NCBI GenBank assembly: GCA_002269645.1 | Contig: NIVC01003720.1 | Coordinates: 1 to 52,405, forward strand | Length of the DNA: 52,405 nucleotides | Source: Macrostomum lignano | Taxonomy: Eukaryota | Reading direction: 5' to 3' | Shown here: positions 15,483 to 31,184 of the stretch, in pieces | Layout: each line of letters opens with the position of its first letter | Position numbering within the stretch: the stretch's first letter is position 1 | Translations under genes and position numbers: made by a program | The notes under the pieces: model-generated | The model's database searches: none | What the model was told of the DNA's origin: nothing | What the model saw: the letters and a program-made list of their open reading frames with translations, nothing else

Positions 15483-15575
15483 ATGACAAAAGTATACTTT
15501 CTTGTATTCATATTTATTTATAACTTTTTGCTTACTAAATGCTACATAAAAACTACCAAAACTCCGCCAACTCAT
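15483..15575 (+). CDS. SDC: Syndecan candidate exon 1 (signal peptide MTKVYFLVFIFIYNFLLTKC...)
   Basis: ATG, hydrophobic core, strong phase-0 donor CAT|GTGAGT matching the phase-0 acceptor at 16133. Unusually AT-rich for an exon in this window. Confidence 0.6.
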
Positions 15576-18500
15576 GTGAGTTTACTATTGATTTCTGTAT
15601 TCTGTATAGAATAGAATGTCTGTATTCTTTATGATGTGTGCATTCCCTCTCTGTTTTAACAAAGGTACTAAATTCAAAACTTTAAAGCTTTAAAACTTTA
15701 AATTTAATGTTTATGTTTATAATTATAAAGTTATTGCATACGTACATGGACGCTTGGGGATTCGTGAAGTGAATAAATCGATTTTAATACTTAGCACTTT
15801 AAAGGAAAAAGTGCACACATGCAGTAATGCATCAAGCACTTAAAGACGAGGATTTTGAAAAGTGAACCGAAGCACGTGCATATGCACACACAGTAGCGAG
15901 AAAAATTTTTCTAGTTCCTCTGGCCCTACAAAAATAATCAAATTGCTTGGAAGCACACATGGATACCCAGCGCAGTTTAACAAAATTATAAACTTCACTC
16001 ACAATTCTAGACCATTGCACATAAGTGTAATTCAGGATCTCTAAAAACAAGTCCATGTCACATTTGATCGGGAATAAAACTTTACGACAAACATTTTATG
16101 GATTTGCTAACATGCTAATTGCAATCTACCAGAGTAGCTTTGCCCCCAAAACACCTCTATTTCAAGCACCACCCTCCTATACCCTTCCACAAAAGCCACA
16201 GCTCAGCGGTTCAGGCGCCGCAGGACCACCAGGCGACGATGAGGACGTTGGAAGCGGCAGCGGATCTGGTTTCCCTTCGGGTGGCCGCTTGTCCCCCTAC
16301 TACCACTTCTCCGCCACCTCTTCGTCAGCCACTACCGTCATTCGCCTGCCTCTGTTCCCAAGTTCAGTGGTCCCAGTTTCAGTCAAGGCCGTCACCCAGG
16401 CGCCTCGCCTTGTCAGTAAGATCTGCATTTTCTTGCATTTTTTCTCTCTTTCGGCGTCCACATGTAGCAAAACGCGTCAAGGTTTCAATTAGAAAATTTA
16501 GAAATCGATTCATTGATAGCAGGACACAACCAATCCTTTTGGGAAATCGTTTCCCGGTGGCATAGAGGCGCGCTTCAACTGGCGTCTACTCCCTAGTTGG
16601 ACTTTTTCCCCAAAATATTTTCCTCTCTAGAAATGCAATTTCAAGTCTGGGCAAGACCTTGTGGGACTGAGACTTCAAAACCGAGCAACCAGGAATTGCT
16701 GCGAGTCTAAGCGAGAAAAAAGGAATCATTCTGAGTCACTAAAAATCTCAAAAGGCAGTGGGGAATCACTGAGTCTCGGAAAGCAGTGGGGTGTCACTGA
16801 GAGTCTCAAAAAGCTGTGGGGAGTCACTGAGTCTCGGAAAGCAGTGGGGTGTCACTGAGAGTCTCAAAAAGCTGTGGGGAGTCACTGAGAGTCTCAAAAA
16901 GCAGTGGGGTGTCACTGAGAGTCTCAGAAAGCAGTGGGATGTCATTGAGAGTCTCAGAAAGCAGTGGGGAGTCACTGAGAGTCTCAGAAAGCAGTGGGGA
17001 GTCACTGAGAGTCTCAGAAAGCAGTGGGGTGTCACTGAGAGTCTCAGAAAGCAGTGGGGAGTCACTGAGAGTCTCAGAAGGCAGTGGGGAGTCACTGAGA
17101 GTCTCAAAAAGCTGTGGGGAGTCACTGAGAGTCTCAGAAAGCAGTGGGGTGTCACTGAAAATTTCAGAAAGCAGTGGGGAGTCACTGAGAGTCTCAGAAG
17201 GCAGTGGGGAGTCACTGAGAGTCTCAGAAGGCAGTGGGGAGTCACTGAGAGTCTCAAAAAGCAGTGGGGAGTCACTGAGAGTCTTAGAAGGCAGTGGGAG
17301 TCACTGAGAGTCCTGGAAAGCAGTGGAAAATGTTCAAAAGCCTCAGTGTACACCGGTGAATAATAGATTATCTAATCCCCTTTAATTCTAGACCCCAAGG
17401 ATCCCAGCCAGTCTCCCGGATGCTCGGAGTCCTGCGCTATGATGAGATTTGGCGTCAGTCTTGGATTCCAGGCCGTCTGGCGCCATGACCTGGCGCGCCC
17501 GCAGAGCGGCGCTTTTCGAAAAGCGGCCGCGCCGATAGAAACGGCTCTGGAGGCCGCCTTCAAGGCGTATCCGGGCGAGCAGACCGCTCGAGTTGTCAGC
17601 TTCAGGTTTGAGTCGGCCTCTTCATTGTGATCTGAGGGATGGGACTTGGATAGGCCTGCAGACAACGGAGTGACAGAGCTGAGACAGTGGAGCGACAGAC
17701 AGGACAGTGGAAATTACAGGCCGGAAATAAGAGTGAAATGCCCGACAGTATAGTGAAATGGAAGACAGCGGAGTGAAATGCAAGACAGTGGAGTGAAATG
17801 CAAGACAGTGGAGTGAAATGCAAGACAGCGGAGTGAAATGCAAGACATCGGAGTGAAATAGAAGACATCGGAGTGAAATGGAAGACAGCGGAGTGAAATA
17901 GAAGACATCGGAGTGAAATGCAATACAGCGGAGTGAAATGCAAGACAGCGGAGTGAAATGGAAGACATCGGAGTGAAATGGAAGACAGCGGAGTGAAATA
18001 GAAGACATCGGAGTGAAATGCAATACAGCAGAGTGAAATGGAAGACAGCGGAGTGAAATGGAAGACAGCGGAGTGAAATGGAAGACATCGGAGTGAAATA
18101 GAAGACATCGGAGTGAAATGGAAGACAGCGGAGTGAAATGCACGACAGTGGAGTGAAATAGAAGACAGTGGAGTGAAATGCAAGACAGTGGAGTGAAATA
18201 GAAGACATCGGAGTGAAATAGAAGACATCGGAGTGAAATAGAAGACATCGGAGTGAAATAGAAGACGTCGGAGTGAAATAGAAGACATCGGAGTGAAATG
18301 CAAGACATCAGAGTGAAATAGAAGACAGCAGAGTGAAATAGAAGACAGCGGAGTGAAATAGAAGACAGCGGAGTGAAATAGAAGACAGCGGAGTGAAATG
18401 CAAGACAGCGGAGTGAAATGGAAGACATCAGAGTGAAATAGAAGACAGCGGAGTGAAATAGAAGACATCGGAGTGAAATAGAAGACATCGGAGTGAAATG

Positions 18501-30500: not shown

Positions 30501-31184
30501 CACATCATCCCAAATCAAGTCACATCATCCAAAATCGAGTCACATCATCCCAAATCAAGTCACATCATCCCAAATCAAGTCACATCATCCCAAATCGAGT
30601 CCCATCATCCCAAATCGAGTCCCATCATCTCAAATCGAGTCCGGCCATCATCCAGAATCAAGTCACATCATCCCAAATCAAGTCACATCATCCCAAATCA
30701 AGTCACATCATCTTAAAAGCGAGTCCTATCATCCAAAATCAAGTCACATCATCTCAAATGTTTTTGTCAAGGCATCCCAAATAAACTCCGATATAATCCC
30801 AAATCCCCTGGCTCCGCAGGCATGACCTTATCTGACCCCGCCGCCGCCGTGGCCGTCGCTGGCACCGCGGCTCCGGCATTCGCGGCCACCTACTCGTCAG
30901 CGGAAACAGTCAGCAGCGGCTTGCCGCTGAACTCCAACAGCAGCGGGCAGCTGCTGGCCTCACCAGGCCTCCTGGCAGCCGCGGTAGCCGGAGTTGCCGG
31001 GGCCGCCGTGCTGCTGCTGATCCTGGCGCTGTTCTGCGTCCACCGGATTCGCAAAGCCGACGAGGGCTCCTACGCGCTGGGACCGGCGGCTTCGGCCGGC
31101 AAAAGCTGGGGCGGAGGCGCCGCCTCTGCCGCCGTAATGCACAACGGGTACAGGCGAGCCCCGACCAGGGAATACTACGCGTAG
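15483..31184 (+). CDS. SDC: Syndecan with Ser-Gly GAG sites and an ectodomain SEA domain (5-exon model, 372 aa)
   Basis: Exons 15483-15575, 16133-16415, 17392-17605, 23217-23380 and 30820-31184 splice in frame (phases 0, 1, 2, 1; 1119 nt). They encode a signal-peptide-like start, DDEDVGSGSGSG, a SEA-like domain, a TM helix, RIRKADEGSY and YRRAPTREYYA*. Confidence 0.75.
16133..16415 (+). CDS. SDC: Syndecan exon with glycosaminoglycan attachment sites and Ser/Thr-rich segment
   Basis: Acceptor CTACCAG and donor A|GTAAG. Encodes LSGSG, DDEDVGSGSGSG (acidic residues before Ser-Gly repeats) and SATSSSATT. Confidence 0.8.
16740..17325 (+). repeat. 30-bp minisatellite GAGAGTCTCAGAAAGCAGTGGGGAGTCACT (syndecan intron 2)
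   Basis: About 19 units; 10-aa periodic ORFs. Confidence 0.95.
17392..17605 (+). CDS. SDC: SEA-domain exon A of syndecan
   Basis: MMRFGVSLGFQAVWRHDLARPQSGAFRKAAAPIETALEAAFKAYPGEQTARVVSF aligns by eye to the first half of perlecan/agrin-type SEA domains (..L....S..FR.....E..L...F...PG.Q...VV.F). Acceptor TTCTAG; the donor AG|GTTTGA is weak. Confidence 0.7.
17690..19115 (+). repeat. 20-bp minisatellite GAGTGAAATRGAAGACAKCG (syndecan intron 3)
   Basis: About 70 units; source of the 506-aa FHFTPLSSISLRCL ORF. Confidence 0.96.
19918..20435 (+). repeat. 21-bp minisatellite GGTGCCATTTTGCCCAATTCA
   Basis: About 24 units; MAPELGK periodic ORFs. Confidence 0.95.
20963..21570 (+). repeat. (AGAT)n microsatellite, about 152 copies, preceded by (ATAA)n
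   Basis: Directly visible. Confidence 0.98.
22243..23165 (+). repeat. 27-bp minisatellite GGTCTGGTAGCGATGGACTCAACTGAG, interleaved with a shorter ...GGTCTAAGCTG variant after ~22800
   Basis: Tandem units visible; MDSTEGLVA periodic ORF. Confidence 0.95.
23217..23380 (+). CDS. SDC: SEA-domain exon B of syndecan
   Basis: Acceptor CCACAG and donor G|GTGAG. Joined in phase 2 to exon A it gives SF-R-KGSIVAEALVISV...GGRFAGMRLLPAHYRFWRL, i.e. the SEA GS(V/I)VV-type motif and a C-terminal F.RL strand. Confidence 0.75.
23510..24195 (+). repeat. 21-bp minisatellite TCTCAATTCCCCATCCCGGTT
   Basis: About 30 units; RNRDGEL periodic ORFs on the minus strand. Confidence 0.93.
24470..24990 (+). repeat. 20/21-bp minisatellite whose unit contains an X-box (GTCTCCATAGCAAC-TGTACC)
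   Basis: Two alternating unit types (…GTCTCCATAGCAAC and …GTCCTCCCTAGCAAC). Confidence 0.9.
25790..26030 (+). repeat. 21-bp minisatellite GGCCCTAGCAACCGATTTGGT
   Basis: About 10 degenerate units. Confidence 0.85.
26186..26266 (+). repeat. (CT)n microsatellite
   Basis: Directly visible. Confidence 0.97.
26395..26760 (+). repeat. Purine-rich ~33-bp degenerate minisatellite (GGGAACAGAAGAGGATTGGGAGAATGGGAATTC)
   Basis: Tandem units visible. Confidence 0.85.
27255..28815 (+). repeat. ~22-bp CpG-rich minisatellite AAAATCGACGCCACTGACACCC with an alternating ...CCGAAATTC variant
   Basis: About 70 units; source of many overlapping minus-strand ORFs. Confidence 0.95.
29575..30760 (+). repeat. 20-bp minisatellite CCCATCATCCCAAATCGAGT
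   Basis: About 59 units; source of the 411-aa SSQIESHHPK ORF. Confidence 0.96.
30820..31184 (+). CDS. SDC: Syndecan terminal exon: transmembrane plus cytoplasmic C1-V-C2 domains
   Basis: Acceptor CTCCGCAG. TM LLAAAVAGVAGAAVLLLILALFCV, C1 RIRKADEGSY, C2 YRRAPTREYYA (EFYA-like PDZ motif). AATAAA at 31428. Confidence 0.93.

Follow-up and report, generated by a model that had tools for sequence, protein, structure and literature searches.

A probable SEA domain-bearing syndecan gene in the flatworm Macrostomum lignano, split into two proteins in public annotation

Syndecans that contain a SEA domain have been described from echinoderms. In the brittle star Ophiocoma wendtii, Seaver and Livingston (2015; PMC4336488) found a "syndecan/SEA domain" protein to be abundant in the skeleton and described this combination as novel, and UniProt entry A0A0K0M974 (Ophiocoma/Ophiomastix wendtii) bears the name 'Syndecan and SEA domain protein'. 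A SEA domain placed centrally in some echinoderm syndecans (holothurian, asteroid, crinoid) was later noted by Dolmatov and Nizhnichenko (2023; PMC10381214), with reliable detection in holothurians and sub-threshold matches in sea stars. The supplementary sequences of that paper score 51.9 (Eupentacta), 15.3 (crinoid), and 13.7 bits (Patiria) against Pfam SEA, and the oyster syndecan in the same supplement has two thyroglobulin type-1 (TY) repeats. Among other proteoglycans, perlecan domain I has a Ser-Gly/SGD glycosaminoglycan (GAG)-attachment cluster directly N-terminal to its SEA domain (PMC2944331). Here we analyze a 52,405-nucleotide stretch of the genome of the flatworm Macrostomum lignano (contig NIVC01003720.1, positions 1 to 52,405; the window), in which a preliminary description had placed, at 15483-31184, a SEA-bearing syndecan for which its author knew of no described example. 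The brittle star protein of 2015 and the other echinoderm proteins of 2023 show that such proteins had been described, and the window gene is a previously mis-split flatworm case of this known, little-noticed SEA-syndecan class. That the locus is one five-exon SEA-syndecan gene is in our judgment very probable, and we hold the whole explanation developed below, including its inferred proteoglycan and self-cleavage steps, to be probable.

The M. lignano locus (15483-31184, +) consists of five exons, of phases 0, 0, 1, 2, and 1, that splice in frame into a 1119-nt coding sequence for 372 amino acids (aa) plus a stop codon. All four introns are of the GT..AG type (donors GTGAGT, GTAAGA, GTTTGA, and GTGAGC; acceptors preceded by CAG or TAG), and upstream of the ATG there is an in-frame stop at 31 codons with no further ATG between. 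The G+C content is 59-70 % in exons 2-5 versus 33-48 % in the introns, of which introns 2, 3, and 4 are packed with minisatellite arrays. Because these arrays separate the exons, a scan for open reading frames (ORFs) yields fragments only, and the earlier explanation that the gene is missed in the ORF track owing to a 5.6-kb repeat-filled intron within the SEA domain proved correct (5611 nt, minisatellites). The encoded protein has, in order, a hydrophobic N-terminus, the acidic cluster DDEDVGSGSGSG, a SEA domain (aa ~141-249), a transmembrane (TM) segment (aa 302-325), and the tail RIRKADEGSY...YRRAPTREYYA. Both the 372-aa model first proposed, with its single open frame and GT..AG at every intron, and the features then listed for the protein (signal peptide, Ser-Gly cluster, S/T linker, SEA, TM, and syndecan tail) were recovered.

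In UniProt this gene appears as two M. lignano proteins, both 100 % identical to the window, the "SEA domain-containing protein" A0A1I8J4U4 (183 aa; P0014 in our collection) and the "Syndecan domain-containing protein" A0A1I8J4U8 (172 aa; P0006), which were retrieved by a profile of the window protein and three echinoderm SEA-syndecans. The former can be rebuilt exactly from exon 1, 16196-16415, exon 3, and a 7-codon read-through into intron 3 (SFR|FESASSL*), and the latter from exon 4, starting at its 4th codon, and exon 5, joined at 23380/30820 and lacking a start Met. Near-identical copies (A0A1I8FYC1, A0A1I8IPU8, and A0A1I8FZ97; P0015-P0017) are split at the same point, and the annotation breaks at intron 3 because this intron is long and repeat-filled. 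Junction 16415/17392 is used by P0014 and 23380/30820 by P0006 and P0015; in all, UniProt models that map to the window at 100 % have three of the four junctions at the exact positions, and 17605/23217 alone is new. The four junctions originally proposed agree with these models at 16415/17392, 23380/30820, and the donor of 15575/16133, and the exon-2 acceptor may differ. One of the copies, P0016 (A0A1I8FYC1), is named 'CASP-like protein' and has a 46-residue N-terminal extension with no start codon, of which the last 27 residues are an in-frame translation of the 5' flank and the part upstream differs from the window; this extension and the name are an annotation artefact.

Read literally, these records describe two separate genes, one encoding a secreted Ser-Gly protein with half a SEA domain (A0A1I8J4U4) and the other a downstream syndecan-tail protein (A0A1I8J4U8), and this agrees with the fact that three independent copies are so annotated and that a SEA-only query of database proteins returned no full-length model, transcript or cDNA-derived protein spanning the exon 3/4 junction. 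The 5' model, however, ends only by means of a 7-codon read past a canonical donor, the 3' models have neither Met nor signal peptide and the start of one coincides with the exon-4 acceptor, and half a SEA domain would be unable to fold alone. When joined, the halves match SEA profiles as well as a paralog annotated as a single model, without a gap and with identical intron position and phase. The Pfam SEA match (aa 155-208) spans the exon 3/4 junction (aa 197/198), and in a MAFFT alignment P0014 and P0015 each dock on a different half of brittle-star SEA domains, with neither overlap nor gap, the junction sequence VVSFR + KGSIVAE being aligned with brittle-star ITGFRHGSIITE. By hhalign the joined domain matches an echinoderm-only syndecan SEA profile with 93.6 % probability (E 2e-7) over 91 columns crossing the junction, and by BLASTP the joined protein aligns continuously with the paralog PAA65095.1 over aa 139-372 (E 3e-39), with 43 % identity in the SEA region and gap-free at the junction. 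From the docking halves, the hhalign match, the continuous paralog alignment, and the common intron position and phase we therefore conclude that a single gene is far more likely than the two-gene annotation, which we consider very unlikely. The proposal of a single gene whose SEA domain lies between Ser-Gly cluster and membrane is supported by homology, and junction 17605/23217 itself rests on sequence comparison. Read as one gene, the locus corrects the public record, in that the paired UniProt fragments of each copy, A0A1I8J4U4 and A0A1I8J4U8 among them, would be halves of one syndecan gene. Further database searches were negative: a full-length homologue search with the spliced protein found nothing, its candidate list being dominated by low-complexity words, and exact look-ups of the exon-5 ORF and of the Amphiura protein gave no record.

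The paralog, BOX15_Mlig001759g1 (PAA65095.1, A0A267EU77; P0035), is a second M. lignano gene annotated as a single model of 445 aa and was found by a full HMMER scan of 1.8 billion representatives. It encodes, in order, a signal peptide, a GSGSGSG/DDEDLG cluster, a thyroglobulin type-1 module, a SEA domain (Pfam 24.1 bits, profile positions 11-103 of 106), a TM segment, and RIRKADEGSY...YEKAPSREFYA. Its six exons were rebuilt on NIVC01001685.1 and translate exactly to the database protein. The intron within the SEA domain interrupts the same Arg codon in the same phase in both genes (TTT CG|gt...ag|A CGG GGC TCA in the paralog versus TTC AG|gt...ag|G AAA GGC TCC in the window), and the phases of the homologous introns of the paralog (0, 1, 2, and 1) are identical to those of the window gene. 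The two genes are alike in SEA, stalk, TM, and tail, including an identical RIRKADEGSY, and in exon plan, intron phases, and the intron that splits the SEA domain. The paralog differs by its thyroglobulin type-1 module in exon 3 and its 28-nt micro-exon, and also by a tail with canonical EFYA and a short V region and by a GxxxG motif in the TM helix. A tblastn search of the window with the paralog detected neither a hidden thyroglobulin exon nor additional homologous exons. The simplest reading of the window gene is that it arose by duplication of a TY+SEA syndecan and lost the thyroglobulin module, not that it is a fresh domain shuffle, and the initial idea of a domain-shuffled proteoglycan receptor as a one-off is not supported, given a paralog in the same genome with TY, SEA, and a syndecan tail.

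The paralog gene spans 89 kb, and its micro-exon (PSDAKNLKQ; L001:98271-98298, flanked tttcag|...|gtaatt) follows a 72-kb intron. Because an ab initio predictor would hardly find a 28-nt exon in such a setting, the paralog model is probably transcript-based. At 43325-43751 (+) of the window, 12 kb downstream of the syndecan, there is an ORF for a V-ATPase proteolipid c-subunit (Pfam ATP-synt_C, 119 bits), and an 87 %-identical copy (L001:2-389, NIVC01001685.1) lies 10 kb upstream of the paralog syndecan; the two families are linked at both loci, and the gene order differs.

Comparison with the UniProt models and the paralog bears on how the exons are drawn. Exon 1 (15483-15575, +) holds the start codon and the signal peptide (MTKVYFLVFIFIYNFLLTKC...) and ends at the donor CAT|gtgagt, both exon and donor being shared by P0014, P0016, and P0017. 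Exon 2 (16133-16415, +), the acceptor of which is uncertain, encodes a Pro-rich N-terminus, the Ser-Gly GAG-attachment cluster SGSG...DDEDVGSGSGSG (16205-16282, +) with its acidic core DDEDVGSGSGSG (16235-16270, +; aa 66-77), and an S/T/V-rich linker. Candidate acceptors at 16133, chosen in the preliminary description, and at 16196 and 16202, used by the UniProt models 63 or 69 nt further downstream, are all in frame and give proteins of 372, 351, and 349 aa, respectively. The latter two (..PPTH|PQLSGSG and ..PPTH|LSGSG) are 6 nt apart in a NAGNAG-like arrangement, and the choice of acceptor alters 21-23 Pro-rich residues following the signal peptide. Exon 2 of the paralog begins at its own GSGSGSG cluster, a closer match to 16196/16202 than to 16133, and because this is the homologous Ser-Gly cluster the downstream acceptors are favored; a gene model of 349-351 aa would be at least as likely as one of 372 aa. 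Exon 3 (17392-17605, +) continues with a short linker that contains Cys (PGCSESC) and with the N-terminal SEA half, which comprises strand 1, helix 1, and strand 2 and ends ...ARVVSFR, and its donor, AG|gtttga, interrupts the Arg codon in phase 2. Intron 3 (17606-23216, +; 5611 nt), inside which both current UniProt models break, is for the most part occupied by minisatellite arrays (17731-19116, 19919-20439, 20926-21578, and 22246-23165). Exon 4 (23217-23380, +), where P0015 begins exactly, encodes the C-terminal SEA half and begins K-G|S-I-V-A, with GSIVA (23221-23235, +), at which autoproteolysis is predicted, between strands 2 and 3. Beyond intron 4 (23381-30819, +; 7439 nt, minisatellite-rich), exon 5 (30820-31184, +) supplies an Ala/Ser-rich stalk of ~50 aa with one N-x-S site, the syndecan-type pre-TM/TM region (30969-31040, +), C1 RIRKADEGSY (31044-31073, +) upstream of a long Ala/Gly-rich V region, the PDZ-type C2 end YRRAPTREYYA (31149-31181, +), and the stop codon.

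Several comparisons identify the joined middle region, at the level of sequence, as a homolog of SEA domains. It falls below the curated Pfam cut-off, and yet the hhalign match and profile searches of the PDB support the SEA assignment made at the outset. A family profile of the window protein and the echinoderm syndecan SEA domains has only SEA domains as its top PDB matches, including ADGRF1 (1.7e-6), 2e7v, TMPRSS11D, MUC16, and agrin (E 1.7e-6 to 2.6e-4), and the best single-sequence match in the PDB is the SEA domain of ADGRF1 (FRNGSIVAGYEV versus FRKGSIVAEALV). An AlphaFold model of aa 222-334 of the paralog, for which the input was an 18-sequence alignment including both window halves, has the order strand-helix-strand-strand-helix-strand with pLDDT 77-93 and an R-G-S turn between strands 2 and 3. 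With this model as a query, Foldseek gave seven matches with E <= 1e-3, all of them SEA domains (TMPRSS6, several of MUC16, and 2e7v, target TM-score 0.66).

The sequence FRKG|SIVAE (aa 196-204) fits the G|S[VI]V[VA] motif of autoproteolysis and falls in the predicted loop between strands 2 and 3, and GSIVA in this loop is the autoproteolysis motif of the ADGRF1/ADGRF5 SEA domains (Leon et al., PMC6954182). One ADGRF1 chain in the PDB matches as a 57-residue fragment that ends at the motif Gly, and the counterparts of the motif are GSILA in the paralog and GSIIT, GSLVV, and GSVKV in echinoderm syndecans. We lean slightly toward the view that the SEA domain self-cleaves at G199|S200. The protein could instead be a true SEA-syndecan, encoded by a single gene, in which the SEA domain does not cleave and acts as a rigid spacer or heparan-sulfate-assembly module, and shedding would then need an external protease. 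Many SEA domains lack self-cleavage, the order of an SG cluster followed by SEA mirrors perlecan domain I (PMC2944331), and the syndecans of parasitic flatworms discussed below seem to keep a SEA-like fold without a GS motif, in which case cleavage would not be essential to the family. The exact GSIVA at the expected strand 2/3 position, and its retention in the variants just listed for the paralog and the echinoderms, speak against this alternative, which we regard as possible but rather doubtful.

Because the SEA domain carries GSIVA, we predict a sheddable, self-cleaved proteoglycan. The domain would cleave itself at G199|S200 (FRKG|SIVAE) during folding, and the mature receptor would then consist of two non-covalently associated chains, alpha with the GAGs and beta anchored in the membrane. 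The beta chain would retain the syndecan tail for binding of PDZ and FERM partners. Under mechanical load or on unfolding the GAG-bearing part would come free, a form of ectodomain shedding that is independent of proteases, and release of the alpha chain under force has reportedly been seen with MUC1-type SEA domains. The ectodomains of vertebrate syndecans are shed by sheddases. In a second possible role the SEA domain might promote heparan-sulfate assembly on the adjacent SG sites, as the SEA domain of perlecan domain I is said to favor such assembly on neighboring Ser-Gly sites. The intact GSIVA makes shedding of the GAG part by SEA self-cleavage and force a testable hypothesis, and M. lignano is a regeneration model for which transgenesis and RNAi are available.

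Membership in the syndecan family follows, by sequence, from the TM region and tail. The match to Pfam Syndecan (PF01034) that had been anticipated was found, with 37.0 bits against a curated cut-off of 25.2 (E 3.4e-9, aa 296-343, profile positions 2-49 of 64). The topology is type I, with the hydrophobic N-terminus MTKVYFLVFIFIYNFLL and a single TM stretch at aa 302-325 (Kyte-Doolittle 19-residue mean 2.8), and the Ser-Gly sites with acidic flanks, SGSG...DDEDVGSGSGSGFPSG (aa 56-81), align with the DDED..GSG clusters of oyster, hemichordate, and sea-urchin syndecans. By phmmer every literature syndecan was matched through xPGLLAA, TM, and R.RK.DEGSY. According to Chakravarti and Adams (PMC1464127) the conserved marks of syndecans are C1, the first Leu of the V region, one V Tyr, and C2 EFYA, with EYYA in Ciona, and C1 positions 2-3 are variable in invertebrates. 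In the window protein the C1 sequence RIRKADEGSY has a single K-to-A change relative to R(M/I)(K/R)KKDEGSY and is identical in the paralog, and both the V-region Leu (DEGSY-A-L) and the Tyr (...NG-Y-RRAP...) are present. The V region is unusually long (25 aa) and Ala/Gly-rich, the C2 end is EYYA, a variant shared with Haliotis, Liolophura, and Dimorphilus syndecans, and the TM segment AAAVAGVAGAAV has only GxxG and small-xxx-small spacings (AxxxG, GxxxA), with GGGIG in the paralog. The nearest tails, among the matches listed, are those of Paragonimus, Fasciola, Dicrocoelium, Schistosoma, and Hymenolepis syndecans. That the Pfam match is limited to profile positions 2-49, together with a weak PDB match to neurexin-1 (E 0.41) over the TM and DEGSY stretch, would also fit some other type I protein with the '4.1m' juxtamembrane motif of neurexin, glycophorin-C, and syndecan. 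Such a protein is hard to reconcile with the acidic Ser-Gly cluster and pre-TM xPGLLAA, with a C-terminal Y-[RK]-[RK]-A-P-T-[RK]-E-[FY]-Y-A common to SDC2/4-type and spiralian syndecans, or with annotated flatworm syndecans as the nearest relatives, and we find this reading scarcely credible. A neurexin/CASPR identity was rejected, as Pfam detects no LNS or EGF modules and the similarity to neurexin-1 is weak.

The divergence of the tail raises another alternative, a decaying or non-functional duplicate of a TY+SEA syndecan that is intact by chance in a recently duplicated genome and perhaps unexpressed. The loss of the thyroglobulin module, the divergent C1, V, and C2, the Ala/Gly-rich, low-complexity sequence of V region and stalk, and the lowest Pfam Syndecan score of the set could all be accounted for in this way, but five open exons with canonical splice sites, an intact SG cluster, GSIVA, DEGSY, and C-terminal YA, and near-identical copies that keep open frames with few substitutions make decay an unlikely explanation. 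A functional SEA-syndecan encoded by one gene remains the preferred reading, and the points that weigh against it should be set out together. The Pfam SEA (PF01390) match has 20.9 bits, below the curated cut-off of 26.4 (E 4e-4, profile positions 14-72 of 106), in a family in which the paralog reaches 24.1, crinoid syndecans 15-23, a sea star 13.7, and holothurian syndecans 33-52 bits. The support for the fold comes from a model of the paralog, with a 43 % identical SEA domain, and not of the window protein itself. A GS[IV]V motif is necessary, not sufficient, for SEA self-cleavage, and the heparan or chondroitin sulfate on the Ser-Gly cluster is a prediction from sequence. No other tail in the flatworm set diverges as much (C1 has the K-to-A change, V is long and Ala/Gly-rich, C2 is EYYA, and GxxxG is weak); relatives reach 61-97 bits against Syndecan where this protein reaches 37, and its tail may be under relaxed constraint. 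To these is added the negative search for a full-length protein across the exon 3/4 junction given above.

The wider distribution of such proteins was surveyed among at least 148 syndecan-tail proteins in the matches listed, a query-biased sample from which absence elsewhere does not follow. A thyroglobulin CWC motif is present in at least 37 of these and a SEA match in at least 20, and beyond M. lignano and one environmental sequence the SEA-bearing ones are apparently echinoderm, most of them being so named by their sources. The environmental sequence (P0044 = L002; contig Ga0593130_007123 of JGI metatranscriptome 3300062033) is an intronless 1.5-kb transcript; the syndecan it encodes combines a Ser-Gly cluster and a single thyroglobulin repeat with a SEA-like stretch (..SIRPGSVIVDMDV..), and its tail is of the KEFYA type. 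The syndecans of parasitic flatworms (P0126, P0153, P0069, P0090, and P0162, from Fasciola, Paragonimus, Schistosoma, Dicrocoelium, and Hymenolepis) have a conserved ~140-aa region after the TY module with the motif ..LVS[TIV]GH.S...RLHEGYLP.VG.VDP... In this mid-region of trematode and cestode syndecans SEA hidden Markov models and hhalign found no SEA domain (probability 0.1 %). Its AlphaFold model has a SEA-like order of strand-helix-strand-strand-helix-strand, with long loop insertions and no GS motif, and the Foldseek matches are weak (Gpr126 extracellular region (ECR), E 5.5e-3, as the best, and MUC16 SEA, 0.036). These predicted models are no more than suggestive of a cryptic SEA-like fold in trematode and cestode syndecans.

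No intron positions are common to the SEA-syndecan genes of the starfish Asterias rubens and the flatworm, the SEA and TM introns of A. rubens being elsewhere. Intron positions thus give no support to a common origin of the echinoderm and flatworm SEA insertions, and SEA may have entered syndecans once or several times. We offer, as a tentative proposal, that the ancestral bilaterian syndecan had a modular ectodomain (SEA with or without thyroglobulin type-1) that was kept in echinoderms and flatworms, persisting in parasitic flatworms as a degenerate, non-cleaving SEA-like fold, and was lost in vertebrates, insects, and nematodes. The self-cleaving SEA domain might then have been the original shedding device, protease-independent and force-sensitive, later replaced by sheddase sites within an ectodomain that had become disordered.

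Several other features occur in the window. A single-exon 450-aa ORF at 6731-8083 (+), G+C-rich like the syndecan exons, contains a sugar-binding region of the DXD glycosyltransferase type (Pfam Gly_transf_sug, 34.4 bits), and an exact look-up of it in a gene-position index returned no record. An ORF at 48728-49264 (-) matches the Yip1 domain below threshold (23.8 versus 28.6 bits) and probably represents a single exon of a YIPF-type gene. At 36641-42152 (-) a series of long ORFs (401, 194, 181, and 225 aa), one of them with a Cys/His-rich N-terminus, matches no Pfam family and is possibly transposon-derived. The minisatellite load is extreme, with arrays at 49-1700, 4588-5600, 9459-10611, and 12836-13700 and in the syndecan introns; their units are of 4 to 40 nt, they extend to 1.6 kb, and they contain many long spurious ORFs in every frame.

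Among known systems, perlecan and agrin resemble the window protein in some respects, perlecan by a Ser-Gly cluster followed by SEA and agrin through its SEA domain, which is among the profile matches. They are secreted basement-membrane giants with many additional modules and have neither a TM segment nor a syndecan tail. The likeness to perlecan domain I drawn in the preliminary description is a fair functional analogy of layout, and no relationship was found beyond generic SEA. Membership in perlecan was rejected, as the LDLa, Ig, laminin, and EGF series was not found, Pfam detects only Syndecan and SEA, and the protein is membrane-anchored; the resemblance would be one of arrangement. The self-cleaving SEA receptors (MUC1-type mucins, ADGRF1/GPR110, and ADGRF5) share a membrane-proximal SEA domain, and GSIVA is identical with ADGRF1, but the window protein has no mucin tandem-repeat domain and no 7TM (seven-TM) domain and instead has a syndecan-type cytoplasmic tail. 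A MUC1-type membrane mucin was likewise rejected, since there is only an S/T/V-rich linker of ~40 aa, which is non-repetitive, and the tandem repeats at the locus are intronic, not coding.

Closer to the window protein are the spiralian TY-syndecans (Crassostrea, Haliotis, Liolophura, Dimorphilus, and Watersipora, and the parasitic flatworms Fasciola, Paragonimus, Schistosoma, Dicrocoelium, and Hymenolepis), which also have a folded ectodomain module. They have Pfam TY and no Pfam SEA, whereas the window gene has SEA and no TY, and the tails of the parasitic-flatworm proteins (LFC[IV][HY]R[IL]RK.DEGSY ... Y.RAP.REFYA) are the closest. The general statement that bilaterian syndecan ectodomains are unstructured, from which the analysis had started, holds for vertebrates and not for the mollusc, annelid, bryozoan, and parasitic-flatworm syndecans with thyroglobulin type-1 repeats. 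Together with the window gene, these make the textbook picture of an intrinsically disordered syndecan ectodomain a vertebrate and ecdysozoan view and not a general one. The echinoderm SEA-syndecans with which we compared the window protein (Ophiocoma/Ophiomastix wendtii, Amphiura filiformis, Eupentacta fraudatrix, Apostichopus japonicus, Asterias, Patiria, and Antedon) share with it, in identical order, the signal peptide, the acidic Ser-Gly cluster, a SEA domain with G-S-[IVL], the stalk, and the syndecan TM and tail. These are deuterostome proteins with tails of the YWKDTKEFYA type, versus the YRRAPTREYYA type in M. lignano. In the literature searched the architecture is described for echinoderms only, and the window gene now places SEA-bearing syndecans in a protostome.

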